Shown: positions 9,001-64,000 of the stretch, in pieces | Layout of the letters: each line of letters starts with the position of its first letter | Numbering within the stretch: the first letter of the stretch is position 1 | Assembly: GCA_950097015.1 (NCBI GenBank) | Contig: CATNEN010000014.1 | Span: forward strand, 2,046,001-2,110,000 | Length of the DNA: 64,000 nt | Reading direction: 5' to 3' | DNA from: Macrostomum hystrix | Taxonomy: Eukaryota; Animalia; Platyhelminthes | Notes under the pieces: generated by a model | What the model was told of the DNA's origin: nothing | Database searches by the model: none | The model's input: only the letters and a program-made list of their open reading frames with translations | Made by a program: the position numbers and the translations under genes

Positions 9001-12000
9001 CCCCAAGATCGCCTGGGGTCGATAATCAGTAAACTCACAGGTCAGGCAGCGGTGAGTGTTATTCCTGGGATCCGGTAGCAGGCCATTGCGGCACAGGCAG
9101 GTGTAGCGCTGATCCTCGGCAGTTGACGAGCGCCGGAAGCACAAGTGGTCGCAAGGATTCCGGGTGGCGCAGATGTCCTTGTATGCTGAGAAATAGAGAT
9201 TAAACAAAGAGCATTGGCATCTGTCCGAAACATTTTGTAGCCTCACTCCGTACTCACTTTGTCTACACATTCTTAGTCTACAGTTCGGCTAAGATCTAAT
9301 GTCTACAGTTCGGCTAAGATCCAATGTCTACAGTTCGGCTAAGATCCAATGTCTACAGTTCGGCTAAGATCCAATGTCTACAGTTCGGCTAAGATCCAAT
9401 GTCTACAGTTCGGCTAAGATCTAATGTCTACAGTTCGGCTAAGATCCAATGTCTACAGTTCGGCTCCGATCAAATGTCTACAGTTCGGCTAAGATCCAAT
9501 GTCTACAGTTCGGCTAAGATCCAATGTCTACAGTTCGGCTAAGATCTAATGTCTACAGTTCGGCTAAGATCCAATGTCTACAGTTCGGCTAAGATCCAAT
9601 GTCTACAGTTCGGCTAAGATCCAATGTCTACAGTTCGGCTAAGATCTAATGTCTACAGTTCGGCTAAGATCCAATGTCTACAGTTCGGCTAAGATCCAAT
9701 GTCTACAGTTCGGCTCCGATCAAATGTCTACAGTTCGGCTAAGATCCAATGTCTACAGTTCGGCTAAGATCCAATGTCTACAGTTCGGCTAAGATCCAAT
9801 GTCTACAGTTCGGCTAAGATCTAATGTCTACAGTTCGGCTAAGATCCAATGTCTACAGTTCGGCTAAGATCCAATGTCTACAGTTCGGCTCCGATCAAAT
9901 GTCTACAGTTCGGCTAAGATCCAATGTCTACAGTTCGGCTAAGATCCAATGTCTACAGTTCGGCTAAGATCCAATGTCTACAGTTCGGCTCCGATCAAAT
10001 GTCTACAGTTCGGCTCCGATCCAATGTCTACAGTTCGGCTAAGATCTAATGTCTACAGTTCGGCTAAGATCCAATGTCTACAGTTCGGCTAAGATCTAAT
10101 GTCTACAGTTCGGCTCCGATCCAATGTCTACAGTTCGGCTAAGATCTAATGTCTACAGTTCGGCTACGATCTAATGTGTACAGTTCGGCTCCGATCCAAT
10201 GTGTACAGTTCGGCTACGATCCAATGTCTACAGTTCGGCTCCGATCAAATGTCTACAGTTCGGCCAAGATCTAATATCTACAGTTCGGCTCCGATCCAAT
10301 GTGTACAGTTCGGCTCCTACCCAATGCCTACAGTTCGGCTACGATCTAATGTCTACAGTTCGGCTCCGATCCAATGTCTACAGTTCGGCTAAGATCTAAT
10401 GTCTACAGTTCGGCTACGATCTAATGTGTACAGTTCGGCTCCGATCAAATGTGTACAGTTCGGCTCCGATCCAATGTGTACAGTTCGGCTACGATCCAAT
10501 GTCTACAGTTCGGCCAAGATCTAATATCTACAGTTCGGCTCCGATCAAATGTCTACAGTTCGGCCAAGATCTAATATCTACAGTTCGGCTCCGATCCAAT
10601 GTCTACAGTTCGGCTACGATCTAATGTCTACAGTTCGACTCCGATCAAATGTCTACAGTTCGGCTCCGATCCAATGTCTACAGTTCGGCTACGATCAAAT
10701 GTGTACAGTTCGGCTACGATCCAATGTCTACATTTGGGCTCCGATCCAATGTCTACAGTTCGGCCAAGATCTAATATCTATAGTTCGGCTCCGATCCAAT
10801 GTCTACAGTTCGGCTACGATCCAATGTCTACAGTTCGGCCAAGATCTAATATCTATAGTTCGGCTCCGATCCAATGTCTACAGTTCGGCTACGATCCAAT
10901 GTCTACAGTTCGGCTACGATCTAATGTCTACAGTTCGGCTACGATCTAATGTCTACAGTTCGGCGAGGATACGGGAACCAATGTAGGCGTAAATTTTCCC
11001 AGACCATTTCTCTGCCCAGCACCCAGAGATACCAGCCAACAATGCCAAAACAATATGAGGCCAGGATTTTTGACAGCCCAGCCTTCAATCGCCCAAGCCT
11101 CACCTGCCGGCCAGGCTTTGTACTCGCTCTTGGAGAGCACCACCAGATTATATGGCAGCTCCGAGACCCGAAGCCGGGTCTGTGTCGCCCGGCAACTCGT
11201 GACCGAAGCTGTCGAGACGCCGGCGGCGCCACCTGCGGCAGCCAGGTCACAGGCAACAACAACAACGCCCTGAATCCAGTAGAGCTGCCTGTCCCGCTGC
11301 TGATAAGCCAGGGCCCTGGCCGGCCGCTTGTCTTTGGGAATGTCCAGCAGGGCGAACGACGAGGGCGAGGTGGGCGAAGCCGAAGCTTCAGTAAGCCAGG
11401 GCAGGTAGGACAGACCGCGGACTTGCATTACGGAATTCGAGCTAATTGACTCCATCCAGTAGATGACCTGCCGTTTTTAGTAGATTGAAAATGCTTTAAC
11501 TGGAGCTAACAGACAAATGGCTTACATCTAGTCTGCTGTGTCACTCAGCTAGTCTGTTGTGTCACTCAGCTAGTCTGCTGTGTCACTCAGCTAGTCTGTT
11601 GTGTCACTCAGCTAGTCTGTTGTGTCACTCAGCTAGTCTGCTGTGTCACTCAGCTAGTCTGTTGTGTCACTCAGCTAGTCTGTTGTGTCACTCAGCTAGT
11701 CTGTTGTGTCACTCAGCTAGTCTGTTGTGTCACTCAGCTAGTCTGTTGAGTCACTCAGCTAGTCTGCTGTGTCACTCAGCTAGTCTGTTGTGTCACTCAG
11801 CTAGTCTGTTGTGTCACTCAGCTAGTCTGTTGTATCACTCAGCTAGTCTGTTGTGTCACTCAGCTAGTCTGTTGTGTCACTCAGCTAGTCTGTTGTGTCA
11901 CTCAGCTAGTCTGTTGTGTCACTCAGCTAGTCTGCTGTGTCACTCAGCTAGTCTGTTGTGTCACTCAGCTAGTCTGTTGTATCACTCAGCTAGTCTGTTG

Positions 12001-13850
12001 TGTCACTCAGCTAGTCTGTTGTGTCACTCAGCTAGTCTGTTGTGTCACTCAGCTAGTCTGTTGTGTCACTCAGCTAGTCTGCTGTGTCACTCAGCTAGTC
12101 TGTTGTGTCACTCAGCTAGTCTGTTGTGTCACTCAGCTAGTCTGTTGTGTCACTCAGCTAGTCTGCTGTGTCACTCAGCTAGTCTGCTGTATCACTCAGC
12201 TAGTCTGCTGTGTCACTCAGCTAGTCTGTTGTGTCACTCAGCTAGTCTGCTGTGTCACTCAGCTAGTCTGTTGTGTCACTCAGCTAGTCTGTTGTGTCAC
12301 TCAGCTAGTCTGTTGTGTCACTCAGCTAGTCTGTTGTGTCACTCAGCTAGTCTGTTGTGTCACTCAGCTAGTCTGTTGTATCACTCAGCTAGTCTGTTGT
12401 GTCACTCAGCTAGTCTGTTGTGTCACTCAGCTAGTCTGTTGTGTCACTCAGCTAGTCTGTTGTGTCACTCAGCTGTCACTCCAGGTAAGCAGCACCCTCA
12501 CCGAATTCTCCGTGTCGATGGCCACGGCGCTGATTTCGTCGGCCTCGCTGATTCGCTGCACAATGCCCAGCACCCGGCCGTCCAGCCGCCTGATGTGCAG
12601 CTGCTTCTGGCCAAAGGGCGCGTCCCGCGACTGCACATCGACGAAGAACAGAATGCAGGCGCTCACGCTGTCCACCGCTAGGGTGCGGCTGAGGATCACG
12701 TGATTGGCCGGCAGGCGGAGCAGAGTGCGCCGATCGCTGCCGTGGTAGTCGTCCACCTTCAGCGCTGAGACGATGGCGTCCGTGAGGTCCGTGTTAGTCA
12801 CCCAGTAGATCTTCCGCCCGATGTCGTCAACTGCCAGGGCCTGCGGAGATTGTGGATTTGTGGTGGATTATCCGATAAATAACAGGAAAGGGCTTTTTGT
12901 TAAATCCAGTCACTAACAGGGGGCGTTGGGATAATCCTATGATTGACAGCTATGTAAGACAATGGGATAATCCTATGATTGACAGCTATGTAAGACAATG
13001 GGATAATCCTATGATTGACAGCTATGTAGGACAATGGGATAACCCTATGATTGACAGCTATGTAAGACAATGGGATAATCCTATGATTGACAGCTATGTA
13101 AGACAATGGGATAACCCTATGATTGACAGCTATGTAAGACAATGGGATAACCCTATGATTGACAGCTATGTAAGACAATGGGATAACCCTATGATTGACA
13201 GCTATGTAAGACAATGGGATAACCCTATGATTGACAGCTATGTAAGACAATGGGATAACCCTATGATTGACAGCTATGTTAGACAATGGGATAACCCTAT
13301 GATTGACAGCTATGTAAGACAATGCGATAACCCTATGATTGACAGCTATGTAAGACAATGGGATAACCCTATGATTGACAGCTATGTAAGACAATGCGAT
13401 AACCCTATGATTGACAGCTATGTAAGACAATGGGATAATCCTATAATAGACAGCCAGGGAAGAAGTTGGGATAATCCAATTAATGATTGACAGCCAGGAA
13501 AAACTTTGCGAAAGCACTGGTGGACCAGTGCAATCAGCACAGGAAATACCTGGATCACGTGGTCCGCAATGATAACGTGAGCTCTGCCAGAGTCGCCGCT
13601 GCCGCTGGCGCCGCCTCCGATGTTGCCGCCATCTCCGGCGTCAATCGGCAGGCCAACTGACGCATCCAGGCGGAAGATCTTGCGGTCTGTGGCGACAAAC
13701 AGAGGCCCGTTGCGTGCATAGGCAACAGCGTGGCAGCGCTGGTCGGCGAGGCTGGGGATGCGGGTCTCGCTGCCCCTGATGAAGATGGAGAGGCCCAGCA
13801 CGTGGCCAATGACAGCCACCAGGTCTGGGCCGAGCTGCTGTGGACCTGCT
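1..13850 (-). CDS. LDL-receptor-related protein, LRP5/6 (arrow)-like architecture, 3' end outside window
   Basis: Exons (minus): ~13850-13550, 12840-12502, 11467-11104, 9185-9039, 8853-8409, 7801-7657, 7558-7269, 6498-5716, 5015-4463, 4124-3548, 3411-3050, 2870-2478, 222-<1. GT/AG ends and phases are consistent. Four YWTD-like propeller blocks (KIYWV, VIYWM, VVYWID, NLYWA, LFYID, ALYWL), each followed by an EGF module (e.g. CATRNPCDHLC..YTCLC), then LDLa modules (FTCRRRRQCVPLSALCNGRPDCHDASDE; QCLPLRFWCDGSAKCSDASD). The start exon and the acceptor at 222 are uncertain. Confidence 0.85.
278..2386. repeat. 30-bp minisatellite, ~70 units, LRP intron
   Basis: Unit GGAATATGATCTGTAAGATTTAGGGATCTG with variants. 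Confidence 0.97.
2863..2962. repeat. 47-bp tandem duplication spanning a splice acceptor
   Basis: GCGAGCACCTGGGCAGGAGGTGGGAGGGGATCGGAGCTGAGATGCTG x~2. Confidence 0.9.
4175..4440. repeat. 22-bp minisatellite, ~12 units, LRP intron
   Basis: Unit ATCCCTCAGTCCTTCAGCTACA. Confidence 0.95.
5053..5686. repeat. 22-bp minisatellite, ~29 units, LRP intron
   Basis: Unit CAGAGTGACAAGCTA(A/C)TCCTAG. Confidence 0.96.
6572..7256. repeat. 32-bp minisatellite, ~21 units, LRP intron
   Basis: Unit AAGGAAATCTCACCCTGGATGCTGATAGCACT. Confidence 0.96.
7876..8370. repeat. 25-bp G-rich minisatellite, ~20 units, LRP intron
   Basis: Unit GGAGGGGATCTAGGGCGGACAGGTA. Confidence 0.96.
9275..10964. repeat. 25-bp minisatellite, ~67 units, LRP intron
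   Basis: Unit GTCTACAGTTCGGCTAAGATCCAAT. Variants increase toward the right end. Confidence 0.97.
11529..12478. repeat. 21-bp minisatellite, ~45 units, LRP intron
   Basis: Unit GTGTCACTCAGCTAGTCTGTT. Confidence 0.97.
12925..13492. repeat. 36-bp minisatellite, ~15 units, LRP intron
   Basis: Unit GGGATAACCCTATGATTGACAGCTATGTAAGACAAT. Confidence 0.96.
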
Positions 13851-14250
13851 GCTGATCAGTTGGGTTGGAAGTATCAGTGTGCTTGGCTAGTGTCCTAGCA
13901 GCTTTGAATTGGATAGGGACCATGTGAAACCCACACAGCATTTACTTCAAAGAGAGCTTGAGTTGATGTTGTAAGCTTTGACTTATGCTGGCATAGTTTT
14001 TACATAGGTAGATAAAATCTAAATTAACAGGACACAATCCAGAATTACCCATCTAGGGCAAATAAATACTATGTCCTTAATCAAACATAAGATAAAAAGT
14101 TAATGTATTTTAAATATAAATTAACTTTATATATAGCCAAACTGACCAAACACTGTATGAAAGTTGATTGTAAAATCCTTTGTTTGAAGGAATCAAAATG
14201 TAACAAAATTATATTTCTTTTTTGCTAGAAATATTTTCTATGATCTCTAG

Positions 14251-14531
14251 CATACATGCGCAACACCCGGCCGACCCGGCCGAACCGGCCAGGTGAAACG
14301 AGGGCCAAGCAAGGTAAGTCGCAAAAACCAATCGACCAAGCGCAAAAAAATCAAAGGGGGGACCAAGGGACAAAAAAGGAAGGCGTGAAGAAAAGAAAAA
14401 AGGGGAGAGAAAAAGACAGCAAATGAGAGCAAACTAAGTCGTAAATAGAGCAATGAAACGAACTAAGTCACAAATGAGAGCAAAAACTAAGTCGCACGGC
14501 TGGCTAAGATTTGGGAGGTTGCGCATGTATG
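14251..14531. mobile_element. Young 281-bp MITE, hAT-like
   Basis: Perfect 14-bp TIRs CATACATGCGCAAC / GTTGCGCATGTATG and an identical 8-bp TSD ATCTCTAG at 14243-14250 and 14532-14539. Confidence 0.9.
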
Positions 14532-14817
14532 ATCTCTAGACCTTGGACCAGAAAGTCTAACCCCTTATGTTACTAACAAAATGACAAAAAGAAAGAAATT
14601 ACATTCATACAATACTTGCAAACTAGTATATATTTGTCAGTTTAGTGTGGCTCTGCTTTTGTAAAAACTAGGGCATAGTAGGCTAGGGCTTAGAACTAGA
14701 ACTTAGAACTAAAACAATATATATATAAAAAGAATAAGTACAGGTGCAAAAGCTAATGAAAGCTATTTCTTTTGCTACAATGGTAACTTAGCATTAACTT
14801 AGCAGGGTGAGTTGCAG

Positions 14818-15100
14818 TTGGCAGCATGGTTAATGCATTTGCTTCTTAACCAAGGTCCCTAAGCTTAATTCCATGGCAAGGCCACATACATTTGGGGTGT
14901 AGTCATGGGGAGAAGGCTTGGGGGCTTAAGAAAGTCAGGGCAGAGGTACACAACTATGTGAGCAAAAGTCTATGTGCAGTATATATGTGTGTGATCAAGA
15001 GTAAGCAAATGGGCAGAAGTGCCTCTTTGCTGGCTAGGGGTCTAGTGTCACCCAATGATATGCCATTGCCTATAGCCTTGCTACAATTATTATTATTTTT
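14818..15100 (+). mobile_element. tRNA-derived SINE family A, heavily C>T/G>A mutated copy
   Basis: Collinear with the copies at 17625, 20490 and 60010. Degenerate A box (TGGCAGCATGG), mutated B box and ATT-rich tail. Confidence 0.75.
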
Positions 15101-17379
15101 TTAACTTAGCAAAAATTAGTCTTATATTATTAAATATTACAGAATTGTAATAAAAAATACAATAAAATTGCTCAACTTTGCCATATTGGCAAATTAGTTT
15201 TTTAGGTTAAGTAAGGCCTACAATATAATCTGAGAATTTAGGTCTGAAATTTGAGATAAACAATAAAAATAGCATTATATGGCATCAAAAGCTAATACTA
15301 TAAAAAGAAACAGATTTTATGGGCAATATAAAGCAAAATAAACTGCTTTATGAACTTTGCTAGTCATATCAAATTATTTCAAATATAACTTTAGCCTATA
15401 TAGGAAAGTGTTAATTGTATAGTGACCATAAAAAATAACAAAACAGCTATTAATATGAGTAACTATTATGCTATTTGTATGGTCACTGTTCAAATAACAA
15501 ATGCAATAACTATAAAATATTTATCAAGATTATTAAGTGAAAAAAATTGTGAGCTGGCTTGAAACTACTAGTCTTTGTGGCTCATATCATAATTTTTCAA
15601 AACTATTCTTCCTATAGAATTATATGTAGTATTTTTTAGCTGGGCCTAGTCATATAATAATAAACAAAAAATACTCACAAGCAGCATTGATCAGACCAAC
15701 ACCAGTGACTGGGTCATCTTTAATTAAAGCAACACTGGGGCAGCAAAAGTATATCAATATACAGACTAAAAGAAACATAAAGCTCATGCTTAGAGAATTC
15801 ACGAACTCAGTTTAGTCTATCAGTAATCAGTGGCTAATTTGTTATATCTAGTCGACAAGACAAAACAAGACAGAAGACTATCTAGAAGGCTAGGAAGATA
15901 GATCATACTAGCCCGCAATCCTGAAATGCACAGCTCAGTTATTTATTTACTTTATCATTTTCACACACACAGCATGTTTAAGTAAATATGATAATATGCA
16001 TAACCTATATTTCAGAATGAAATTCACAGGTGTATCATAGAATTAAATATATAGTACAGCTATCAATAGGGGCCTTGTGTTGCGCGCGAGGTAAATTAAA
16101 TATTACGATTATTTTTTACAAGAAATCAAAATTTGAAGCCAAAATGAGTTAAGAAAAACAACAATTCCATTGCTTTAGGCCAGCGGGAGAGGATTTATAA
16201 GAGGTAAGTTGATACAGTCTACTAGCCAACACGGTACTATACTGTTTGCGAGGACTCTGATTTCGTAATTGCGAATTAGCAATGGAAAAGAAAATAGCGT
16301 ATTTATGATTGTGCACCTATCGTTCTTCAAGTGTACTTACACAAGTACATTTATGTCACGAAAAATATTCTTACTAACGCTAATACTTGTTTTTCGCTTT
16401 TGCCTTCGCTTACGCAATCTGGGAATTGTACGTGTGGCAGAAGTTTTGCAGCTTTGCATAATCACGATATCAGGTGCACACATTTAGATCTGTTCTCTAT
16501 ACCATATGTCCGCGCTGGATACGGGTATCAGAGAAAGCCAGAGTTCAGTTTCTTTCTCTTCAGAGCTGACCTTCTTGATCAATTTTCTGACTGCGCTATT
16601 AATGCTGGCCTTTAATTACGAGGCGGATTCCATGAGACGAGTCCAGCTATTCGAGCTGTGCAGTGGACACAGATAAACAATCAACTTTGTTCACAAGCCA
16701 TTCATATGCGCATTCAAAGTAATGAAGACTCTGGACTTGCTTAAACTCGTCAACTTACACGTGAGTGCTATTAGGAGGGATAAGGGCAGCAATGAAGCTG
16801 AGAAGCTGCAAGCTGGCACTTGGATGACGAAAATGATGCGTGCCTCAAGAGGTAAGAATATTTACTGCCATGGAGTCCTCTACGACAGCCAGTTCGATCC
16901 TATACAGAAGGCAATACATTTAAGTACTTTCATAAGCAGGCTGTCATGACAGTAGCCATGATGACAGCCATGAGCGAAGCCGTGTTTACATCATTTTTGG
17001 ATTAGAAGTGTGTGCTGCAGCAGTGTATTTTGTGTAGATGCTGCTGTGTATTTTATGTTTCGTTTTAACTGAGCTAGTCGTTGAAGGGCATTCAAGAATA
17101 AAATGTGGAACAGTAAAAAAATGTGCTAGATATAATTTTTATAAAAACTAAGTTTTGATTCCCGAAGCTTTATAATTTTATATCTATATGCCTTCTATAT
17201 ATCGTATCTGCTGTCTCGTAGTTACACTCACAGATTCTACTCGTTGTATTTATAGTTACTTATAGTTACGCGATGTTCCGGCTAGGCCGCTAGGGAATTC
17301 CCTTGGTGGAATTTTCGCGGATACCCCATCATGCTTTGATAGCACACTTGGAGAAGCCCCTCGCGTGATAATTCCTTCC

Positions 17380-17624: not shown

Positions 17625-17935
17625 TAATATTAATAAAATAAATAATGATTGCAGGAGGGCTGCGGAAAAATTGTACAGTATTTGGTGACATTAGACACGC
17701 AGCCAGCGAGGAGGCAATTCTGCCCATTTCGCTGATCTCTGAGCAGACACGCACGCAGATACTGTACGCAGGCATACGCTCACACAGCGTATACGCATGA
17801 AGATGACTTTCTTATTGGAGGTTGGCCCTCTCTCCGCCGCTGCGCCGCAATTTAATTGGAATCTTGCCGCGGAATCGAGCTCAGGGACCTTGGTGCGAGA
17901 GGCTTGTGCATTAGCGCGCCGAGTGCAGGATCTGA
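17625..17935 (-). mobile_element. tRNA-derived SINE family A
   Basis: Minus-strand head CGCACCAAGGTCCCTGAGCTCGATTCC (B-box-like), shared body GGGCAGAATTGCCTCC..GTCACC and ATT-rich tail. Confidence 0.75.
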
Positions 17936-18063: not shown

Positions 18064-21000
18064 TCACACAGTGAGCAGCTTTCCAGCCAGTCGTACGTGA
18101 TACGCCAGGTCTCTCAGCTGCCTGCTGATTTCATCCTCCGTGGCCGTGCCCAGCTGCAGCTCGGTCAGCAGGTCGGACAGTCCGGGAAAGCGCACGCCGC
18201 TGGGCTCTTGCGGGTACTTGCCGGAGGCGAACACCAAGTTTCCGATGTACGGCCGGCGCGGCTGCCCGCGACCAGCGAGGAAGCTCTGGGTCACTCGCAT
18301 TGCGACGTCATTGATTCGGCGCACGTCCATTGGACTCCGACGATTGACGGTCTGCGCGTCCCACGCGGCCGCCTGTTTGGAAGTCGGTTGATGCAGTTAA
18401 GCGATTTCTTGTTTCGGCTTATAACAGTTGAATGACCAGGCATTTTTTCTCCCTGGCCAAAGACCACGGGGGCAAATTCACGGTAGCTGCCAAACCGAAT
18501 GACCGATTTTCGTGAAATTCCACCATATGGATCAAAATTTTCCGCCTGTTACGATAAATTAACTTTCAAGCCATCCGAGTCAGCATTGTCGAGATATCCA
18601 GCGATTCCAAACGCTACTTCTTTTCGAAGACCCTGGTGACACAAACTAGTTAGTAACATTGCGCGAATCCATATTGGTTCAAAAGTAAAAAAAAATTACA
18701 CAGTTTAAGCATTCCATAACAGTTAACAATGATGGCCGACATGGATACATGATGAAATTTTTGTGAGCTGAGAAAATATTCCTGTGCTGAGAAAATATAC
18801 CTGTGCTGAGAAAATATACCTGTGCTGAGAAAATATACCTGTGCTGAGAAAATATACCTGTGCTGAGAAAATATACCTGTGCTGAGAAAATATACCTGTG
18901 CTGAGAAAATATACCTGTGCTGAGAAAATATACCTGTGCTGGTAGTTTTTGCCACCAGACACTCCGACGGGAATCGTTGAATATCTCGACGATGCCGATG
19001 TTTTGTGATTCTTGCCGATGTTCTGTGATTCTTGAAGTTGTTTCATCGAATAAAGCGGAAAATTTGAGCCTTGATTTATTGATTTTTATGGCTATTGGTT
19101 GAACATTTTCTACAGTTTTCTACAAGGCTACAATCAGTTGAAAGCTAAACATAACAACACAACCATGCGGTGCGAAATTGAAACGGCAAATGTTCATCTG
19201 CAGCTGAAATTCTAAAATATAAAAATTCTTTGGCAACTCAGGTCAGCTTATTTTCGAATTCATCAAATCAAACGCACCTGCTGCCGCAAGTAGGTAACGC
19301 TGTCACCAAGTGCGGTCACGGACTCATTTAGTTGTGGCAGCGCTTTGATTGCACTGCTGCCGTTGACGCTGGCGAAAAATCTGACCAGCTCAAGAGCATT
19401 GTTGCTCATGTTCAGCGCGTAAGGCAGCAAGTACTCATCAGCCAGCTGCCTGACAGCCTCGGTGAGCAGTCGGGCCGAGGACAGGTGCGCCTTGAACCCG
19501 GGGTCCACGTACGTGTCCACATAGTAGAAGCTCTCATACCTGACGTGGTACACGGGATACAGCGAGGACTCCTTGGGGTCGGCCCGGAACATGATGTCCA
19601 AGGACGGGATGGAGGCGAGCTCAATGAAGCCTGCGTAGTCCGAGCCGCCCAGTGGAGTCGCCATGCCGTCCATCGCCGACTTGCCTTCTGCCCACCTCGC
19701 TGACCAGGTGTCGCCCATGGTGTGGCCGGGGTTCACCTCCTCGGGCAGGCTATCCATCAGCGTCTTGGCGAAGGTGCGCAGGCTGGGCATCGCACTGGTG
19801 CGCATGCTGTAGTTGCCGCACACCGCAATGTCGATGTTCACGTAGGCCACAACTGACTGCGGGCGATAAGCCAGCTGAAAGCACTGTCCCAATGTCCCAA
19901 TCGCAATGAACTAAGAAAAGTGAATCTGTGGTCGACGAGCTGACGAAATTTGAGAGCTTGTCAAAGCTGCTCTGAAGTACATGGGTGTAAAATAATAATA
20001 ATTGCGGGAGGGCTTCCTCCCATTTGTCTCGGTACAGTGAAAGCCGATCTCATTAGCACCTGTAGAGTCATTCCCCTGGTCGTCGAATTCCTAGTCAAGA
20101 GTCGGCAACTCACATCCTTGAGCAGCAAGGCGTTCTCCTCAACGAACTCCCAGCTGCCGATGAGTCCGTGCTCCTCTCCGTCCCAGGTGCACAGCATGAT
20201 TGAGCGACGGGGTTTCCAGCCGTTGGCCAGCATGTCGGCGAGAATCTGGCTGAGCTCCATCAGCACGGCTGTGCCGGAGGACGGATCGACAGCACCGTAG
20301 CCCCAGGCGTCGCGGTGGTTGCCCACAATCACCCACCTGGGTGATTTTAGACGATTCTTTTGCATTTTGCGTCAAAGAACACCATTTTGCGACAATTTTG
20401 GTGGAATATGGCAACAGCTGGACGACCCATGGGGTATGAGCAGGTAAGCTCACACATTTAACCATGTGGAAAGGTGCGAACACCCACCCCGGTAAACGTG
20501 TTTGCCTCTCGCGCCAAGGTCCCTGAGCTCGATCTAGGGCGCAGCCGCGGACAGAAGGCTTGTGAGCTTGTCGTCCAATTTACGCCCTTGAGGGCCAACC
20601 TCCAAGGCACAGTGAGAGTGTACACTGCCTGACGATGAGAAAGTCAGGGCAGATGTACACACCTGTGTGAGCGTGTGCATGCGGACAGTATCTGTGTGCG
20701 TGTGTGCTCAGGATTTTAGCGAAATGGGCAGAATTGCCTCCTTGCTGGCTGCGGGTCCAGTGTCACCAAATGATGTTCTGTTTCCCGCAGCCCTCCTGCA
20801 ATTATTGTTATTATATTATAAAGTGCAACCCCAACACTCTATTTAACGTTATTATTGTCAGTGTCTGAAAATCCCGAATTCCTTATTGTGTCCTCAGCAC
20901 TGGCAAAACGCGTGCTTCAAACTAAATAATGCATCGAAAAGTTCGCGCTCTCACCTGTCCGGCTCGATGTCGCCGCGAATGCGAACGCACACGTTTTCAA

Positions 21001-30415: not shown

Positions 30416-31826
30416 TTGACTTCGTCAATGTGATTATCGGTCGCGTAAGTAAAATTATCGAAGTAAAATCTGCCTTCGATAGCTACGGAACGCATTCACC
30501 TAGTATAAAGCTTGCAAAAAAGTTTTGTATTTATTGTACCGCAGGGAATTTAAACTAAGTAATGAGTTGTTATCATGCAAGTAAAAAAAGTAAAAAATCA
30601 ATAAGCAAAGTATATTTACTGCATTAAATATAATTACACGAAAGGATTTGTAGATATATTGCTATAAACAAAAACGTTTTGTTTTTCTTCTTTAAGTGCA
30701 CAGCTTTGAAAGGTTTTTCCGATTTTTTGGGCGAAACCATGATACAGATTTTAACAATGTATATCATTATTCAAACGATTCCATTTTTAAAGCTATCGAT
30801 TTTCGCTTTCAGATTTTCAATCACCTTTATAGTTTACTCATGGAACAAAATGTTGTGTTTAGACGAAACATGTTATAAGAACCCGCAACATTTTGACGAC
30901 GAAGTTTTGGTACTTAATTAATGTTACAAGGACCACTAGTAGATCTCTACTCCACTACTCCTATTTGTCCTTGTAATAATTATGGACGTATCACTCACTA
31001 TTAGAAAGTATAATATTCGATGACTATTTAGTATTAATATATCACTATTAGGAAGTAATCTAATGTATTTATACGGTGCAAGCACTCTAATGAGGATTCA
31101 CGATTAAAAACACGAAAGTTTATTTCTTCGTTTCCACAATTTAAATGAATAAACGAAATCATTTTATTAGGTTGTTTCAGTTTTTGGCCGGGAAATCGAT
31201 CATGCTCTCCAGCCCACGAATAATCCTATAACTAATTTCTCGTAGTGCACTTTCTCGTAGCTTATCGAATTTATCTAAGCTGTGCATATCTAATGCAAAT
31301 GTCTAATTTCAACTTTAATTGTATTTATGGGTGAATTTAAGCAAATAAAAGTACGTGCGTATACAGCACTGAGCGTCCCAAAATAAAAATTACTTTTTAC
31401 TAACTGAATTTTAAAAGATTACTGAAACGATCATACTCATGCAGCATGCAGCTGCATGAAGTCATCGACTACAGGTATCTCAATTGGTTTAACTTAAGAA
31501 TAAATGAGCTTTGACTGTGCATGTGCATTTTTCAGTTGACTACCAAAGTTGGTTTAAATTTGTACGAACATCATCAGCGTCTCGGCACTAAAACACGCAA
31601 AAAGACTCAGTGTTATAAACTTGACAAGAAGCTATTGTCTATGGTAAAAGATCGTTCTTAAGTAACTTTCCTTGTCTTATTTTATGCCTTACGCATTTTG
31701 CTTAGACAAGTACAGTGACTCATTCACTAACTTTGAGGATAATTAATTTGGTAGCTACTATCGAAACAAAAGTGAGTATACTTTGCGGATATTAACGCTC
31801 AAGGCACTGCAGAAGCAGAAAGCAAG

Positions 31827-36537: not shown

Positions 36538-38835
36538 TTTTTATTCGGAGTCTATTTTGTTTTTTTCTTTAGATTAGGATTCCAAACTTCCAGCATCATT
36601 ATACCTTACAATGCATAACAAAAGTAAATTAAAGTTAAAAATTATCAAAGCACGTTTCTTCGATACTACTTCGACTAAGGCGAAGGAAATTATGGACTGA
36701 GGTTTGAGTGGTTTTGAGTATGGCTGCACAGGCGCTGGCCGGACGCGTAGTACTATAGACAGGACGCCGCCACAGGACCAAGTAATTTGTATTTTTCGTT
36801 GTTCTAACTAACTGATAAATGCAGAAAAAATAGGTTTGCTGGAATAGGCTCTGAAGCAGATCAGTTTTTAAATAAAAGTTCAAGCATATTTCGGACGGAT
36901 GGATTACATGGCGTACAATTGGAAGATGTTCCATCGTACAAGATGGAACTTAAAAGCATGTATTCCTTGAATTTCCCAACTTATTCTAAAGATTATCCAG
37001 GCGCAACAATCTCATAACTACGCTACTCTAAAAAAGACACAGAATTGGCTAAGCATAGGATTTGTCTTTGATTCCTTTGTTTTAATTCAAAAAATTAAAT
37101 CTCGAGTCCTGAACTCAAATTCAAATTCAATTAGTCCTGAGACTTTTTTTTACAGTTTAATAAAACAATGATTGACTTCTTCAGCTCAGCTAGGCCTGCT
37201 ATAGTGTGAACCAGTATTTAAACAATCTAATTATTAATGCTAGCTAAGTTGCTACTACTGATTTATTATTTATTAAACATAACATTCAATGTTTCAATAA
37301 AAATAATGTGTAGAGTTTCATTTAATATTATGCACGATATTTGTCTGTAATCTGTGAGCCAGTCAATTTACATAGATTTGCTGTGCTGCCCTTTACTCCA
37401 CGAGCTGAACCAAAAGCACAAAGCAATGCGCTGATATCTTTAATAAATATATTATTTAAAAAATGTACCCGTGCTGTGACTTAATATATTTAATAAAGAT
37501 GGTTGTCACAAAAGTGACCTATTTTACAAAATGGATTTCATCAAAATATTTGTTGCTGAAATGAACTCTTAGACTATCTATTTTAACCATGTGCCATATA
37601 CTGTTCAGTTTGTTGAATTTTTTCTTTATTTTTAAATAAATAAAAAACACCTTGATTTCTTGACTTGAAACAACTTGAACAATAGCTAGGCCCTAACTTG
37701 AAATAGGACCAACAAAATATTTTTCAGTTTTTAGTAACATTAGGGTTTTGAATATTGAGTAATTTGCACAAATAATGCTTGGCTGCATTTTCCTATTTTG
37801 CCAAACCCAAAGTTATACTTTTATTATCATAACATCATTTTTGCCACTTGATATTGAGAAATATTGAGAATTTAGAAAAAATTAACTTGAGCAAAGATAC
37901 TGACACTAATTAAAATTCTCAGCAAGAAAATGCTCATTTGTACTAACTATTTTAAACTAAGTATAAATTTTGAGTAGCCTAATTTCTTATATCCTCAGAT
38001 TGAGAAGCATGACCTTTCAAATATGTACTATAATTCTCATCCTAGATTTTTACTTGGTGTTATCTAGAATAAGTTGAAGGTCTGACTGATTGCCTACTGG
38101 AAAGTAAATATTATGTATGTATGTGTAGCTATACAACAAGAAAGAAAAGCTAATGTTATACCTAAATGCTGGACAGCCACAATGTTAATGGTATAGAACA
38201 TAAAATTATGCTTTTTATCTCTTTTTTTCTATATTGTTAATACTGTTATACATATATATTCCACCTGACGCTAACACTGATAAGCAAGCTATCTTACAAA
38301 AATATAAGTTTTTGTCAATTTTTGCCTTTCATTGTGTCAATCAGATTTTATATTTGTTTTTGAGCTAATAATTATAAAATATATACTTTTACATAAAAAT
38401 TTAAATGTTATATCTATATTAATATATATAAAAGTGCATACCATACTATTAAGTGTATCTTCAATTGTCAAAATTTTTTGCTCATTGGGTAAGGCTTTTT
38501 ACTGTGCACTTAGCCCCTCTTAGTGTGAATTAAGCAAAGCTAATGCTTTCAAGTTGACACACATCAATAATGATAATCTAGTAAGACAGTAATTTCTTAT
38601 CTGTGTTTGCACTATTTTTGTTTTAAAACAGTGATACACTTTAGTTGCAAGCCAAGCTAGCCTAGCCAGTTAAGACATGACTAAACCATAAACAACATTG
38701 GTTAAGCACAGTTTTTAACTACTGATAAGCTGTTTTATGACTGGCTTTTGATTGCTTTATATTAAAAGTTTTCTGTATTGTCTAGACAATTTCAATTATT
38801 TAATCTCCGCAGTGCATTCACTACATTTATCCTCT

Positions 38836-43199: not shown

Positions 43200-43434
43200 A
43201 CGGACCCTCGCTGGACACAACTCCAGATCCCAATTAATGCTTGATTAGACATGACTCGATACTTTGAGTACTATTTCAGAGGTGAGTGAATTTCCGGCCG
43301 GCTTATAAAGCTCCAGAATCTTCATTCCAGGAATTTAGCTGCGTTGCGAAGATTTCAGGGCCGAGTTCTCGAATTGAACTCGAGATTAACTAATCCCATA
43401 GATTTATGATTTAATATCTCTGAGGTTTAGATAA

Positions 43435-59055: not shown

Positions 59056-61180
59056 TCAGCCCCTCGGAGTGAAGACGATCTTGTGCAGCGGCGGCGACCG
59101 CAGCACTGTGCCCTTGGAGAAGCTGGGATCCTCGGTGAGGTGCCACAGAGTCCGGCCGTCTTCCGGGTCCAGGTCGAAGCGGTAGCGCTGGACCAGCGCC
59201 ACGAAGAAGACGAAGAGCTCCATGCGGGCCAGGCTCTCGCCCAGGCAGGCTCGCTTGCCCAGGCCGAACGTTGCCAGCTGGGGGCACGCCACGAACTGGC
59301 CGTCCCGCAAGTGCCTCTCTGGTAGGAACTTCTCCGGCTGCGGGAACACCGCCGGGTCGTGGTGCATGGCGTACACGTTGAATGCGCAGATGCTTTCGGC
59401 GCGCATTCGGCAGTTGCCAGCGATGGTGACGTCGTCGGTCACTCGGTGGAAAATGCCCAACGGCACCAGGCTGGCCTTGCGGTGCACCTCCTCGATGACG
59501 GCCTGTGGTGTTGTACAGTTCTTGTACTTCAAGAGAGCGATGCTCTGAAAGAATCGTAAAAAGTATTCAATCTTCAAAGCCCTACCTGAGTGTACTGCAG
59601 CTGCGCCTTGTCCTGCATTGTTGGGAGCCGGTCGCGACCGATCGCGTTGACCACCTCCTCGTGCACTCGATCGGACACGTCCGGATTGGCGATCATGAAG
59701 AGGATGGCCCAGCGCAGCGTGTTGGCCGTGGTGTCGGTGCCAGCGATGAACAGGTCGCTGACGGCCATTGTCAGACGCGTGTCCGTGAACATGTCAGGCT
59801 GGTCCCGCTGATGCAGCAGGTGCGCCTCGATGTAGTCTCTGGGGATTTGGCGGTTCATCGGCTCGGATGACAAATATACACTCAGCTAACAGATCTCGGC
59901 ACTTTTAGGAAAGACCTTCAATGGCTGTGTACAGCTTTTCAGTCTGTGGACTGTGGAGACCACCAAAACCATCAAAATGTCCACCCCAGCAAACGGTTGC
60001 GGACAATGGCACATCATGTGTCTATGGCACATCAGGTGACACTAGACGCGCGGCCAGTGAGGAGGCAATTCTGCCAATTCCGCTGACTCCTGAGCACACG
60101 CACACAGATACTGTACGCAGGCATACACTCACACAGGTGTGTACATCTGCCCTGAATTTCTCATCGTCAGGCAGTATACATTTCACTGTGCCTTGGAGGT
60201 TGGCCCTCAAATTGCACGACCAGCCCCCAAGCCTTCTCTCCGCGGCTGCGCCCCAAATGAATGCAGTCTCGCCCGCGTAATCGAGCTCAGGGACCTTGGT
60301 GCGTTAACCGCTCTGTCACTGAACCCCTGCACTCACGCACACAGAGCACATGAAACTGGTACCTGGCCCGGTGGACGCCCTCCATTTCGGCCACGTGCTT
60401 GTCCCGCTGGGTCTGGCAATAGTCCAGCAGCTTCGTGAAATCCTCCACGGCAGCCTTCGAGCCGGGCAGCTTTAACAGCCAATTTGCGATGAAGGGGCTG
60501 AGCTCAAGCAGAGGAATCATCGACAAGAACATGGCGTTCGTGGTGTTGGAGTCCGCGTTGTGCGTGATCTTGCGGAACAGCTCGAGCAGCTCGCCGAACT
60601 TCTCATCCTCGGATGCCAGCCGGGAGCCGAACACGAGCTGGCAGATGATGTTGCTGGTGGCCGTGCTCAGCAGCAGTGAAGTTTCCACCGGCTTGCCGCC
60701 GGCCTCATCAAGCACCCGCCTCAGGTGCTCGACCTCCGCGGTCACGATGTCCTCGGCACCTCGCCTACCGAAGCCGAAATCGCGCAGCGTCTTCAGTGTG
60801 AACCGGCGGTACTCGCGCCACACCTCGCCGTCTGAGGAGACGATGCCGCCGATATCGCCGAACAGACGGGCCGTCAGCTTCTGACTGAGCCGGCCAGTCA
60901 ACTGCTCCGCGTTGTCCACCATGGCCTCCTTGAAGACGTCCCACCGGTTGAACACGTAGACGCACTGGATGCCGAAGTGAACGCGAACGATCGGCTCGGT
61001 GCCGTAGTTGTCATGCAGCCAGAGGTACAGCGGCTCCTGTATGTGCCACATGCTGCCCACAATCGGGTAGCGGCCCACCGACGGCGGCTCCCGAGCGTCC
61101 TCCCAGAGCTTACGGCCGAACCAGTACAGCCCGAGGGCTGCCGCACCGCCTGCCAAAGCCACGCTCGTTGTCAGCGCCAT
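59056..61180 (-). CDS. Cytochrome P450, clan 2 (CYP2-like), ~505 aa
   Basis: Exons 61180-60363, 59838-59586, 59502-59056 sum to 1518 nt. N-terminal anchor, WREYRRFTLKTLRDFGFG, I-helix AGTDTT, ExxR (EVHR), PERH and heme motif FGLGKRACLG. Confidence 0.95.
60010..60308 (-). mobile_element. tRNA-derived SINE family A, in P450 intron 1
   Basis: Extensive identity to the reverse complement of the 20490 copy (GGAGGTTGGCCCTCAA, GTACATCTGCCCTGA, ATCGAGCTCAGGGACCTTGG). Confidence 0.8.
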
Positions 61181-61225: not shown

Positions 61226-64000
61226 GCCCGAGAAATGCTTGCTTTATAGTTAGTTGGGCTGAGCCAAAGCTGCCACTTTATAGCTGATAGCACTGACCTA
61301 CCGTGTCTTTGGGTGGGTGGGCAGTCTTTTTCTTACCCCTCTGCCTTGCACTGAGTCTACTGCAGTGCTCTTCAATTCATCGTACATTTCAATGCTAAGC
61401 CCTGACAGAACTTATTGTGTTTGGCCTGTTCTCTCGCAGCAGCAGCTCAAAGCGTGCGTCAGTTAGGAACTGCAGTGCCAGCGCATCCAGAGCCGCAGCA
61501 GTGAATTCTGACCTGAGTTGAGACTACCGCAGCTTGTTAATATAGGACTGCTTGGTTGCGATGAGAAACAAATGTGTACCTCAAGTGCGGCTGAAGTGGC
61601 TGTTTTTTGCGCTTGCTCGGAGACTACATATTGTGCAACTGCGATAAGAAGCTATTTATAGGTTTGAATATTGTATAAATTATGATAATTATAACTGAAA
61701 CTCTTGCAGACAAATACATGCAGAACTATGTACTACTTGTGACCAAAGGGTACCCTCGGCCAGGGTACCCTGGGGATATACGGGCCAGCTACTGATTTCA
61801 GTCAGTAGTTCGGATCGGCTCCATTCTAGAGCCTTTATAAGTTGACGCGAAAGGACACGTGAATTCCCGGCTGGAAGGTTGACACGAAATCCCTGCAGTT
61901 TTTATCCATTTATCCCCCTAGAGTACTATACTACAGTGGTCCTTGGCCCATGCTCGAACCAAGCCTCCGTGCCAAACAGACTTACATACGAGCGTATGCT
62001 AAACGCGCATTCACTGCACGTCGCTAATTAATGGTGCATGTAATTAAGTATAAGTTATACTACTGATGCAGCGGTCCCTTGGCATGAGCATCTTACACGA
62101 GCGGTGTCTCCGGGAATTTCAGTCATAGCTTTGCTATACCTTGCTCTGTTGCTCAATATTCACGGATGTAGAGTCAAATTAAAGAATAAACGCACAGATT
62201 AAACAAGTTCTTAGTTCTTTACAACCCTTCGGGATGTAAGTTTAAGCTCCTCAAATAATATTTACTGAAGTAAGACAAACTATTTTGGGACTTAAAAATT
62301 CCTTGACCCTATAACCCTTACACTAATTTCGGGAAAGCTTAGCTATCCGAACTGACTACCCTGATTACTCCGATGTTCTGAAGCACACAGTGTGATCTAC
62401 GACTGTGTTCACTGTCAGACTGCTGTTTTGGTTCACGTGTTTAGTTAAGCCAATTTTGGATGTTTACATTTATAACAAAGGCTAACTGCTAGAACGAACA
62501 AACGTTTATAATTTAATGAAGTAAAGAAACAAAGTAAAAATCGACGGAGAACCTTTTCAAAGCAAGAGGCTAAGTTAAAATAGCAAAGGTTAGCAAATTT
62601 TTCTGCTAATTCGATGAATCGACAATACCGGTCTTGAACTATCATAATTCGGCAAGAACGCTATAGATAGCTAATTGCTCTTTTTATTGCAATCGATACG
62701 AAGTTGCATTCTTGTTGCATACATCGAATGCCAAGAGGTAATCGTACCAACTATATTTTGTTACATCTTATCTGATTGAAATAATTAAGCCTAGTGATCA
62801 TACACTTCGATTACAACAATGGAATCACAAAAATAATATTTTTGCATTTTTGTATTGCGAAAATAACTTAGGCCTAAATTGTGTATGCTTATGTAGGGGG
62901 GCCTATCTATAAAATGTTTTTGCATGCAAATGAGTAGGTTTGGCTTGGCTTTGAATTTCTATTCTACGTTATATAAATACTAGAACTGGGCTCATTGCTA
63001 CCTATCTCTGTTAATCAAGACCTAGTTAGGCCCCTATTATATTATACACTTACATATATTATGCAATAGGCCTACCTAATTGACTACATATTCCTAGATT
63101 CCTGCCCGACTACCTGAGTTTTTTGTTTTATAGAGCCTATTTTATATTATTTACAGACCTTAGCTCATGAGTCATGCCACACCTGGACCTGGCTATTAGT
63201 AGGCCTATGGCTCTGCCTACTTGTTTAGATGCAATTGAAAAAATGATCCATCAGAGTGATAAAGAAATGGTGTTAATATGATAATGATACACTGTATATT
63301 CAAATCTCCAAAGCAATTATGATTATTTAAGGGTGGATTTCTAATTGAAATTATCATCTTCAAAAGCTATAGCACTTTGGCATCTTATTCAAAGTAGGCC
63401 CTGTATAATTTTGGTTTTGGATGCTAATCAGCTCAATAAGAAATCAGCCTGAAAGTGTTAACATTCTAAAACTAGAGAATTTTATGTCTCTAGTTAGCAT
63501 GCATAGCTACTATGAAGAGAACTATGGAGTAGGCCTATGTGTTACAAAGTGGAGTGGCACCCCCTTAGTTTTAGAAGAATATAATTTTCAATGGTGTGGG
63601 TTATAATAGTGCATGTAACAATTGATACAAATAGTCCAGAGCAAATGACCATAAATCAAAAGTGCAATGTTCATATACTTTTGGTTTCCAGCAATCAATG
63701 GTGATTAGGCTATTTGATGAAAATGAAAATGAATTTTTTGTCTGTTGTATCAGATCAAATCATTTTTCTTTAAAAGTTACATTGAAATGATTGCCTTCCA
63801 AAACTGATAATATGCAAGTGTATGATCATTTAACTATTGTAACTGATTTGCAGTTCTTTTGTTCAAGCCATGATTTCTTAAGCACAGCAGACACGTTTCA
63901 AAGTTAATCATCAATTGTAACTAGTTTGACAAATAATGATTGATAATATTCAATCAATCATAGTATTGAAATATTTCTATATTTATTAAAATAACACTTT

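Follow-up and report, generated by a model that had tools for sequence, protein, structure and literature searches.

Mosaic invertebrate genomes leave most of their DNA unmethylated, carry DNMT1 and DNMT3, and show conversion of CpG to TpG and CpA on both strands; in insects, gene-body methylation can be 5'-biased, lying within genes just past an unmethylated promoter. A CpG desert that we analyzed in the flatworm Macrostomum hystrix resembles these systems in each of these respects, as far as the position of methylation can be read from sequence. It departs from insect gene-body methylation in covering only ~2 kb, namely the end of a probable exon 1 and one intron, with the neighboring exon untouched, in being depleted totally rather than partially (CpG observed/expected ratio, o/e, ≤0.02), and in having a clear non-CG component (CA > CT > CC). 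Non-CG methylation by mammalian DNMT3 is likewise asymmetric and set by the 3' neighbor in the order CG >> CA > CT > CC, with CAG as the top site (PMC7736785, PMC7335073), whereas the pattern described here is deduced from substitutions alone and concerns an invertebrate germline and small domains.

Three further systems offer partial likenesses. Fungal RIP also produces AT-rich tracts of C>T and G>A changes that include repeats, selects its targets by dinucleotide and leaks somewhat into flanking DNA; unlike in RIP, repetition is not the trigger here, the prime target is CpG instead of CpA, changes are not coordinated by strand, and, outside of three loci with a PF00145 domain (DNMT1, DNMT3 and an unclassified third), no RID-like gene was seen. 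Plant chromomethylases, which act on CHG, would share some excess at CAG and CCG, but their activity is symmetric (CAG = CTG), whereas CTG is cold here and no chromomethylase-like locus was detected beyond these three loci. The somatic hypermutation window of AID starts a few hundred bp past the transcription start site (TSS), spans ~2 kb and affects both strands, as does the desert; AID, however, depends on a 5' context (WRC) and acts in somatic cells of vertebrates, whereas the changes described here obey a 3'-neighbor rule and have become fixed through the germline.

Macrostomum is among the few flatworm lineages retaining DNMT1 and DNMT3, and the M. lignano genome paper that Wasik published in 2015 is said to include bisulfite data. 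Two reports describe this congener of M. hystrix as keeping both genes and having low 5mC (PMC11292947, PMC9246332), and a description of the methylation pattern is lacking for all free-living flatworms (PMC9246332).

A CpG desert that tracks gene structure

The desert lies in a 64-kb window, by which we mean the whole stretch of 64,000 nucleotides analyzed (Table 1). A sequence-only reading of the window had reported two of its parts to be free of CpG and had pointed to similarly AT-rich DNA with more than 25 CpGs; its coordinates and quoted strings proved exact. We counted no CpG in 14524-15801 against 32.8 expected (P ~4e-12, taking a local o/e of 0.8), none in 13905-14250 against 7.4 expected, and 33 in the AT-rich comparator at 30421-31300 against 21.9 expected (o/e 1.5). 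Elsewhere in the window, the long runs without CpG are minisatellites whose unit has no CG (273-2387, 11473-12502, 38809-40120, 43382-45292 and more); the desert itself (13832-15802) is not a tandem repeat. A genome search with 15110-15800 returned the self-match alone in the 220-Mb genome, and the single-copy DNA that is wholly CpG-depleted at the desert exceeds 1.5 kb.

Table 1. Features of the window, with positions counted from its first letter.
Feature	Positions	Strand	Remarks
Exon 2	13549..13851	-	GC 0.65; 27 CpGs vs 32 expected
CpG desert, left half	13832..14259	.	0 CpG vs ~12 expected; GC 0.33; non-tandem; unique DNA
Intron, bulk of desert	13852..15678	-	GTGAGT...AG on minus strand
Young 281-bp MITE inserted in desert	14251..14531	+	carries the sole CpGs within the patch
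CpG desert, right half	14523..15802	.	1280 bp; GC 0.32; 0 CpG vs ~33 expected
Hypermutated tRNA-derived SINE copy	14819..15097	+	lacks ~70 bp of consensus middle; every CpG lost
Upstream exon	15679..16088	-	AT-rich; stops in all frames across most of length
Control SINE outside desert	17641..17903	-	CpG bases changed 1/32
Control SINE	20490..20814	+	CpGs kept
Second non-tandem CpG desert	37471..38808	.	1 CpG vs ~26 expected
Control SINE	60024..60328	-	CpG bases changed 3/33; just downstream of P450 first coding exon
Third non-tandem CpG desert	63108..63894	.	0 CpG vs ~21 expected

The position of the desert follows that of a minus-strand gene. A spliced contig of 2558 nt (run X3) connects 12839 with 13549 and 13851 with 15679; at the latter junction, it skips 1827 nt with plus-strand ends that read CT..AC. 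This 1827-nt interval is probably intron 1, and the exon upstream of it is probably exon 1, consisting of the 5'UTR and the start codon; in this exon, a short hydrophobic ORF beginning with ATG reaches the exon end in a phase that matches the next exon (each exon was translated on its own). Exon 1 has CpGs at 16083/85/87, 15914, 15853 and 15802, and none beyond. The desert takes up the 3' part of this exon and all of intron 1, and ends exactly at the edge of exon 2, whose ORF gave no match in a Pfam search. It thus tracks gene structure, beginning ~200-300 bp after the putative TSS and extending for ~2 kb.

Within the desert lies a MITE with 14-bp terminal inverted repeats (CATACATGCGCAAC), flanked at 14243-14250 and 14532-14539 by a target-site duplication of 8 bp (ATCTCTAG). 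Its family is very abundant, and a 96.8% identical copy is found at L025:914-1194. Compared to the family majority, the copy in the desert has lost 3 of ~19 CpGs (A/A/T in place of G/G/C at 14291/14470/14501) and carries 2 other changes, a pattern that fits a gradual, ongoing decay that would only now be beginning.

Location separates hypermutated from normal SINE copies

For the SINE family, we used a 370-bp consensus built from 30 young copies, with 20 CpGs per SINE. Relative to this consensus, the copy in the desert has 15 C>T and 18 G>A changes, 5 reverse transitions and 18 transversions. Its 33 C:G>T:A transitions are spread over both strands, as the sequence-only reading had stated, although their share was overstated there as nearly all changes, since they make up 59% of the substitutions. 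The control copy at 17641-17903 is older, as judged by its transversions (20) and A:T transitions (10).

Genome-wide, the family has more than 5000 copies, ~2% of which are hypermutated and ~98% of which have their CpGs intact. CpG retention falls into two states, with most copies keeping 80-100% of the 20 CpGs and rare ones 0-20%. All hypermutated copies with sequenced flanks lie in ~1 kb of CpG-poor, AT-rich DNA, and two young hypermutated copies (L037 and L095, with 6-7 transversions) have already lost 16-17 of 20 CpGs. CpG decay is decided by location, and not by age or repeat identity. The loss is therefore something other than the ordinary CpG decay of old repeats; nor did the idea of a system that mutates repeats hold up, given that the non-SINE DNA of the patch is single copy, that nearly all SINE copies keep their CpGs, and that the young MITE in the patch has barely started to decay.

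The substitution spectrum is set by the 3' neighbor

To define the spectrum, we compared 10 hypermutated with 81 normal SINE copies at sites remaining after the removal of 44 that are polymorphic among normal copies; the hypermutated set is small (n = 10), and 7 of the 10 were picked for the loss of two CpGs, with the selection segment left out of the counts. C>T changes per site in hypermutated versus normal copies amounted to 0.454 vs 0.022 at CG, 0.189 vs 0.0075 at CAG, 0.105 vs 0.012 at CAH, 0.085 vs 0.012 at CTH, 0.057 vs 0.0045 at CTG and 0.044 vs 0.020 at CCH. Overall, non-CG C>T is ~7x higher in hypermutated copies, while A:T transitions are about unchanged (0.014 vs 0.011, 1.3x), which bears out the earlier proposal of a regional, cytosine-directed mutational process that acts here and elsewhere in the genome and reaches non-CG sites. 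Transversions are ~2-3x higher in hypermutated copies and have no AT bias, for which age, alignment noise or a regional effect are possible reasons.

The same proposal had assigned this process a combined CG and CHG specificity, with extra changes at CAG, CTG and CCG. CAG is indeed hot, to a significant degree over the 10 copies, and CCG weakly so, with CHG exceeding CHH in hypermutated copies at an odds ratio of 1.68 (p=0.014). CTG is not: 28 of 148 CAG sites (18.9%) are changed as compared to 8 of 140 sites of its complement (5.7%; p=7e-4). In an independent set of 35-mers, found with fully transition-degenerate patterns that force TG/TG or CA/CA at two CpGs (20 and 9 places), the corresponding numbers are 10/40 for CAG and 2/60 for CTG. 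The order is thus CG >> CA > CT > CC and asymmetric, not one of CG plus CHG. By 3' base, rates are 0.45 for G, 0.10-0.19 for A, 0.06-0.085 for T and 0.044-0.10 for C; by 5' base, they are 0.116 for T, 0.101 for A, 0.093 for C and 0.066 for G. In other words, the C>T rule is set by the 3' neighbor (G >> A > T > C), with little influence from the 5' neighbor. A CpG no more than 3 bp away goes with a 1.7x higher frequency of non-CG changes, the hottest context being CGCAG (12/32). Two sites diagnostic of subfamilies, at consensus positions 59 and 2, were the source of a spurious uniform rise of all non-CG contexts, in which CAG seemed just as hot in normal copies.

At the CpG sites of the 10 copies, we found 77 TG, 64 CA, 13 TA and 12 CG, with the outcome at a given site varying between copies. 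Every hypermutated copy contains both C>T and G>A, and runs coordinated by strand are absent; in copies chosen by top-strand CpG losses, the non-CG changes are mainly on the bottom strand. Each copy decayed on its own, at the site where it now stands. Outside of SINEs, 5.1 kb of unique DNA drawn from 8 patches shows a CpG o/e of ≤0.02 and contains every non-CG trinucleotide. CAG and CTG are not depleted in its trinucleotide composition, which we do not count against targeting of CWG, because conversions of CCG to CTG and of CGG to CAG replenish it.

DNA methyltransferase genes

A profile search of the M. hystrix genome identified three PF00145 loci. One is DNMT1 (PF00145 at C2:2150957-2155240, DNMT1-RFD at C2:2159710-2160021), one is DNMT3 (PF00145 at C11:3925561-3925812, ADD_DNMT3 at C11:3928437-3928589), and the third lies at C39:20070480-20070950. 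Beyond these three, no further C5-methyltransferase, RID-like or chromomethylase-like locus was found in the genome. An unusual methylase, for which the sequence-only reading had suggested a search, is not needed, with two of the three loci being the standard DNMT1 (RFD domain) and DNMT3 (ADD domain).

Origin of the desert

On balance, we believe that the desert is probably the trace of mutations left by a small domain of germline DNA methylation that decays by deamination; 5mC as the cause of the CpG loss is what we infer from the spectrum. Such a domain would begin ~200-300 bp into exon 1, occupy intron 1 and halt at exon 2. Inside it, DNMT3 would establish and DNMT1 would maintain CpG methylation, and deamination of 5-methylcytosine to thymine on either strand would turn each CpG into TG, CA or TA. 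The CpGs of the inserted SINE would have been erased in the same way, and those of the younger MITE would be starting to go. A side activity of the DNMT3 type that prefers CA, above all CAG, over CT and is weakest on CC could account for the weaker non-CG excess of C>T, and a rule set by the 3' neighbor agrees with methyltransferase recognition. Mammalian mCAG is also found in oocytes. The mammalian mCH site is CAG in ES cells and, in neurons, CAC (PMC7736785); a flank preference is known for DNMT3B (PMC7335073). Taken together, the evidence points to a small methylated domain that had not been described, and not to a RIP-like or plant CHG-like system.

Several features sit uneasily with a 5mC domain. 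The decay is extreme, with ~7% of CpGs left in copies whose A:T transitions stand at 1.4%; this survival, together with an equilibrium o/e of ≤0.02, means that CpG transitions are ~35-100x as frequent as other transitions. In mammals, this ratio is ~10-20. As the value here is several-fold higher, spontaneous decay of 5mC may not be the sole contributor. To our knowledge, substantial germline non-CG methylation is atypical of invertebrates. In addition, exon 2 keeps its CpGs right beside the desert, so the end of the domain must be very sharp.

An alternative is an enzyme-driven mutagenesis close to the TSS, in which active deamination would strike cytosines over the initial 2 kb of certain transcription units, in a programmed or collateral zone and not by slow decay. 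The agent would be a dedicated deaminase or a methyltransferase acting as one, as proposed for fungal RID. CpG loss at this pace outruns classical 5mC decay, the distance from the putative TSS and the length are like those of the vertebrate somatic-hypermutation window, and non-CG cytosines are changed as well, most of all near CpGs. Against this, it is the 3' base that fixes the motif, and the coldest neighbor at -1 is G, a pattern opposite to that of AID (WRC) and different from that of APOBEC (TC/CC); strand-coordinated runs are absent, CpG loss in the MITE is partial and gradual, and the genome has just the three C5-methyltransferase loci with no extra RID-like gene, so that we consider active deamination rather unlikely. 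Quite unlikely, in our view, is a regional bias independent of methylation, whereby AT-rich first-intron DNA gains C>T faster owing to easy melting, transcription-associated single strands, poor repair or a lack of GC-biased gene conversion. It would suit the fact that the patches are AT-rich in all cases, that all non-CG contexts are raised somewhat, that transversions are up to ~3x higher, and that the plus strand of the intron DNA has a slight A>T skew. Yet it leaves the near-total, CpG-specific loss unexplained: elsewhere CpG is not hypermutable (0.022 in normal SINE copies vs ~0.013 at their non-CG sites), the comparator at 30421-31300 is equally AT-rich and rich in CpG, the context order differs between patch and normal copies of identical sequence, there is no G/C strand skew, and the added transversions show no AT bias.

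The deserts could also be relics of an older genome-wide methylation, being the oldest neutral DNA, with the mutated SINEs either the most ancient of the family or members of a CpG-poor subfamily. The higher average number of transversions in hypermutated copies speaks for this, as does the abundance of young repeats and minisatellites in most other DNA. However, young hypermutated copies exist alongside older intact ones, the young MITE in the desert is already losing CpGs, and TG and CA outcomes are independent among copies and thus not inherited from a CpG-poor master; we judge this reading very unlikely and largely refuted. A RIP-like or plant-type symmetric CHG chromomethylase system appears extremely improbable. 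While CAG and CCG do lie above the average CHH, a hot CAG with a cold complement does not amount to plant-type symmetric CHG methylation, and mutation of unique DNA together with the sparing of 98% of SINE copies does not amount to RIP; the uncoordinated strands and the lack of a C5-methyltransferase locus beyond the three add to this. The exotic claim of RIP or plant-like CHG methylation in an animal can thus be dropped.

Returning to the germline methylation domain, a bolder version of it would be a mode of methylation new to animals and used by Macrostomum flatworms, with short, sharp domains at the exon-1 end and intron 1 of certain genes, saturated at CG, appreciable at CA(G) and mutating at ~100x background. 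We regard this version as doubtful, if conceivable; under it, the ~100x rate might arise from missing T:G repair or from methyltransferases that themselves deaminate, and every CpG would be erased, reshaping first introns and incoming transposons. More generally, the sequence by itself yields a prediction of both the location of methylation, in small 5'-intragenic domains making up ~2% of the sampled DNA, and its specificity (CG >> CAG > CAH/CTH > CCH). If confirmed, this would constitute an unusual animal methylome pattern, limited to first introns, saturating and with a germline non-CG component, and it would provide a natural system to measure 5mC mutability, as SINE and MITE copies that have been dated number in the thousands, both within domains and outside of them.

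Other deserts in the window

Scans of the 64-kb window for tRNAs and Rfam families gave no match. Two further non-tandem CpG deserts are present in it. A CpG-free minisatellite follows the desert at 37471-38808, which lies upstream of a nuclear-receptor ORF starting at 40887; the one at 63108-63894 is found ~2 kb upstream of a P450 start codon (61180, minus strand).

CpG deserts in the window

Window-wide, the CpG observed/expected ratio (o/e) is 0.72, with values of 0.5-1.3 in most 1-kb bins. Most of the longest CpG-free runs are trivial, being minisatellites with a CG-free repeat unit; the non-tandem deserts are listed below with the features around them. The sequence-only reading had described a CpG-free patch with an excess of C>T changes, and both hold, as shown by the CpG counts and the context table; its coordinates and quoted strings were all correct on re-check, and its AT-rich comparator (30421-31300) contains 33 CpGs where 22 are expected. 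The patch DNA outside the SINE (15110-15800) occurs once in the 220-Mb, 42-contig genome, the assembly of which has been published (PMC10468722). We sampled ~350 kb of this genome: besides the window, 87 loci of ~3.2 kb each and 11 short ones. Non-tandem CpG-free runs of at least 400 bp account for 1.9% of the unselected part of this sample. All 500-bp bins that lack CpG have a GC <0.45, and unique patch DNA (5.1 kb) has a CpG o/e of at most 0.02.

Minisatellites (units of 14-36 bp, 10-150 copies; 37 TRF rows, 275-58995) are found in nearly all introns and intergenic stretches, where they account for long spurious ORFs and for several kilobases of trivial CpG-free DNA. One minisatellite, CpG-free and TG/CA-rich with a 36-bp unit (38841-40142), directly adjoins the second desert and may or may not share its domain.

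CpG deserts, the MITE and neighboring exons in the window
Feature	Position	Strand	Remarks
Non-tandem CpG-free run (patch)	13832-14259		0 CpG, ~12 expected
MITE	14251-14531	+	14-bp inverted ends; 8-bp target duplication ATCTCTAG; source of CpGs between desert halves
Non-tandem CpG-free run (patch)	14523-15802		0 CpG, ~33 expected
Non-tandem desert	37471-38808		1 CpG, ~26 expected
Non-tandem desert	63108-63894		0 CpG, ~21 expected
Exon 2	13549-13851	-	GC 0.65; 27 CpG, 32 expected
Upstream exon, probable exon 1	15679-16088	-	AT-rich; all frames closed except a short ORF
Nuclear receptor, first coding exon	40887-41927	+	zf-C4 at aa 173-221
CYP2-like P450, first coding exon	60287-61180	-	

Two states of SINE copies

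The SINE is a 370-bp element with a tRNA head, 20 CpGs and an (ATT)n tail; the genome contains 5018 matches to a 35-nt pattern taken from it. The patch copy has no CpG left. Relative to the consensus, its transitions are 15 C>T, 18 G>A and 5 in the reverse direction, and it has 18 transversions. Among 109 copies with at least 10 alignable CpGs, retention is bimodal: 81 (normal) keep at least 80% and 10 (hypermutated) at most 20%, with few between; of the ~104 copies from unselected DNA of the sample, 2 are hypermutated. Copy age does not explain this split, since the copies at sampled loci L037 and L095 are young (6-7 transversions, like average copies) yet have lost 16-17 of 20 CpGs, while at 17641-17903 just 1 CpG base has changed in a copy with 20 transversions and 10 A:T transitions. 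Ordinary CpG decay of old repeats, which had been named as a possible refutation, is therefore not the cause. The outcome at each CpG site (TG, CA or TA) varies from copy to copy, so the losses arose in place rather than being inherited from a CpG-poor master. In the young copy L037:1317-1675, the first 15 CpGs are gone and 3 of the last 5 are retained (P ~0.009), which suggests a domain edge within the element, but its 3' flank is CpG-poor too.

Context of the C>T changes

Non-CG cytosines in patches are really hypermutated (table below, from which 44 sites that vary within the set of 81 normal copies were left out; two CAG sites of the SINE are subfamily-diagnostic).

Changes per site in hypermutated and normal SINE copies
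Class	Hypermutated	Normal
C>T at CG	0.454	0.022
C>T at CAG	0.189	0.0075
C>T at CAH	0.105	0.012
C>T at CCG	0.103	0.015
C>T at CTH	0.085	0.012
C>T at CTG	0.057	0.0045
C>T at CCH	0.044	0.020
A:T transitions	0.014	0.011
Transversions (about 3x raised)	~0.036	~0.011

In hypermutated copies the rate at CAG is higher than at CTG (p=7e-4) or CAH (p=0.018), and that at CA higher than at CT (p=0.008) or CC (p=7e-5); counts from 20 genomic 35-mers, obtained independently, were 10/40 for CAG, 2/60 for CTG and 11/220 for CHH. The 5' base has a small effect (0.066-0.116). Hits are 1.7x commoner within 3 bp of a CpG, and farther off are still ~5x above normal. The rule is thus CG >> CA(G) > CT > CC, which is asymmetric: the non-CG excess claimed earlier is real, but its proposed CHG specificity is not. 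Within hypermutated copies, the hottest non-CG site is CGCAG, with the C of CAG directly 3' of a CpG (12/32; SINE consensus positions 98, 237, 306 and 343, e.g. window 15069-15077), and GGCAG sites are cold (1/47).

Origin of the patch

The patch is best explained by a small germline 5mC domain, the cytosines of which would deaminate and so cause CpG loss; most likely, ordinary animal methylation of cytosine acts here in a local variant form that leaves an unusually complete footprint. AID/APOBEC motifs lie 5' of the cytosine, unlike the pattern seen here, which is defined by the 3' neighbor. DNMT3-type enzymes resemble it, with a target defined by the 3' neighbor, CG first and CA(G) next; DNMT3B/3A flank preferences have been described (PMC7335073), and mammalian mCH lies at CAG in ES cells and at CAC in neurons (PMC7736785). 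The genome encodes DNMT1 (RFD and catalytic domain on contig C2) and DNMT3 (ADD and catalytic domain on C11). A third C5-MTase locus (G000:C39:20070480-20070950), matching PF00145 positions 2-128, is presumed to be DNMT2. Our profile search of this genome revealed no Dcm-, RID- or chromomethylase-like locus beyond these three. The DNMT1 RFD match (G000:C2:2159710-2160021) has one in-frame TGA, which might mark an intron edge, misassembly or a defect. For M. lignano, passages in PMC11292947, PMC9246332 and PMC10658182 report that DNMT1 and DNMT3 are retained and 5mC is low, and state that methylation patterns of free-living flatworms are unknown; the patch predicts such a pattern.

Both systems to which the patch had been likened, RIP and plant-type CHG methylation, are not supported. 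RIP is defined by repeat dependence, which is absent here: unique DNA is affected, so the process is regional rather than repeat-induced. Strand coordination is absent as well, with C>T and G>A mixed in each hypermutated copy. Plant-type CHG methylation fails on symmetry, given the difference between CAG and CTG. A relic of ancient methylation fails both the age test and the copy-independence test, and a regional mutation bias independent of methylation cannot produce CpG-specific extinction, as equally AT-rich neighbors retain a CpG o/e of at least 1. Active TSS-proximal deamination we consider unlikely. The intron has no G/C strand skew, which argues against transcription-strand-specific damage.

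Under the germline 5mC domain, the rate itself is demanding. Hypermutated copies, with 1.4% A:T transitions, have kept only ~7% of their CpG dinucleotides; both this and the o/e of unique patch DNA imply CpG transitions ~35-100x faster than others, above the mammalian ratio. Methylation to saturation, a lack of T:G repair or deamination assisted by an enzyme could be the reason. The raised transversions likewise sit less easily with this explanation.

The MITE, a later insertion into the desert, differs from its family majority at 5 positions, 3 of which (14291, 14470 and 14501, of ~19 CpGs) are CpG>CpA/TpG; given these changes in a young element, decay appears gradual and still running. The family, with another copy at L025:914-1194, is extremely abundant (summed contig depth ~5000x the single-copy level). 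Counting bases that depart from the window copy at 10% or more of contig depth, there are 13 minority variants; all are C>T/G>A at CpG positions (10-36% each), making CpGs the family's most variable sites genome-wide.

Host gene and gene context

Exons in the window encode EGF and PA domains as well as a zf-C4 nuclear receptor and a P450, the exon of which is 76% identical to Macrostomum lignano proteins. Contigs of run X3 look like spliced transcripts, since they connect 13851 with 15679 and 12839 with 13549, and the skipped stretches have GT..AG ends when read on the minus strand; a donor GTGAGT at 15678 and an acceptor AG at 13852 can be read from the sequence. With each exon translated on its own, a short ATG-started hydrophobic ORF reaches the 3' end of the upstream exon in the phase of the next. 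Contigs, splice sites and exon features thus place the patch over the 3' part of the probable first exon and the entire following intron. The last CpGs lie ~170-290 bp past the X3 contig 5' end (16088), and CpGs resume exactly at exon 2. Each of the other two deserts is found 1-3 kb upstream of a first coding exon (nuclear receptor and P450), compatible with such a placement, though unproven; the next intron of the P450 gene is no desert, since CpGs are retained by the SINE copy that directly follows its first coding exon. In one further contig of run X3 (231 nt, depth 8), 14010 is connected with 14531, so that the MITE and 240 bp of desert are missing; it shows ~4% other differences and could represent a deletion allele, a paralogue or an artefact.
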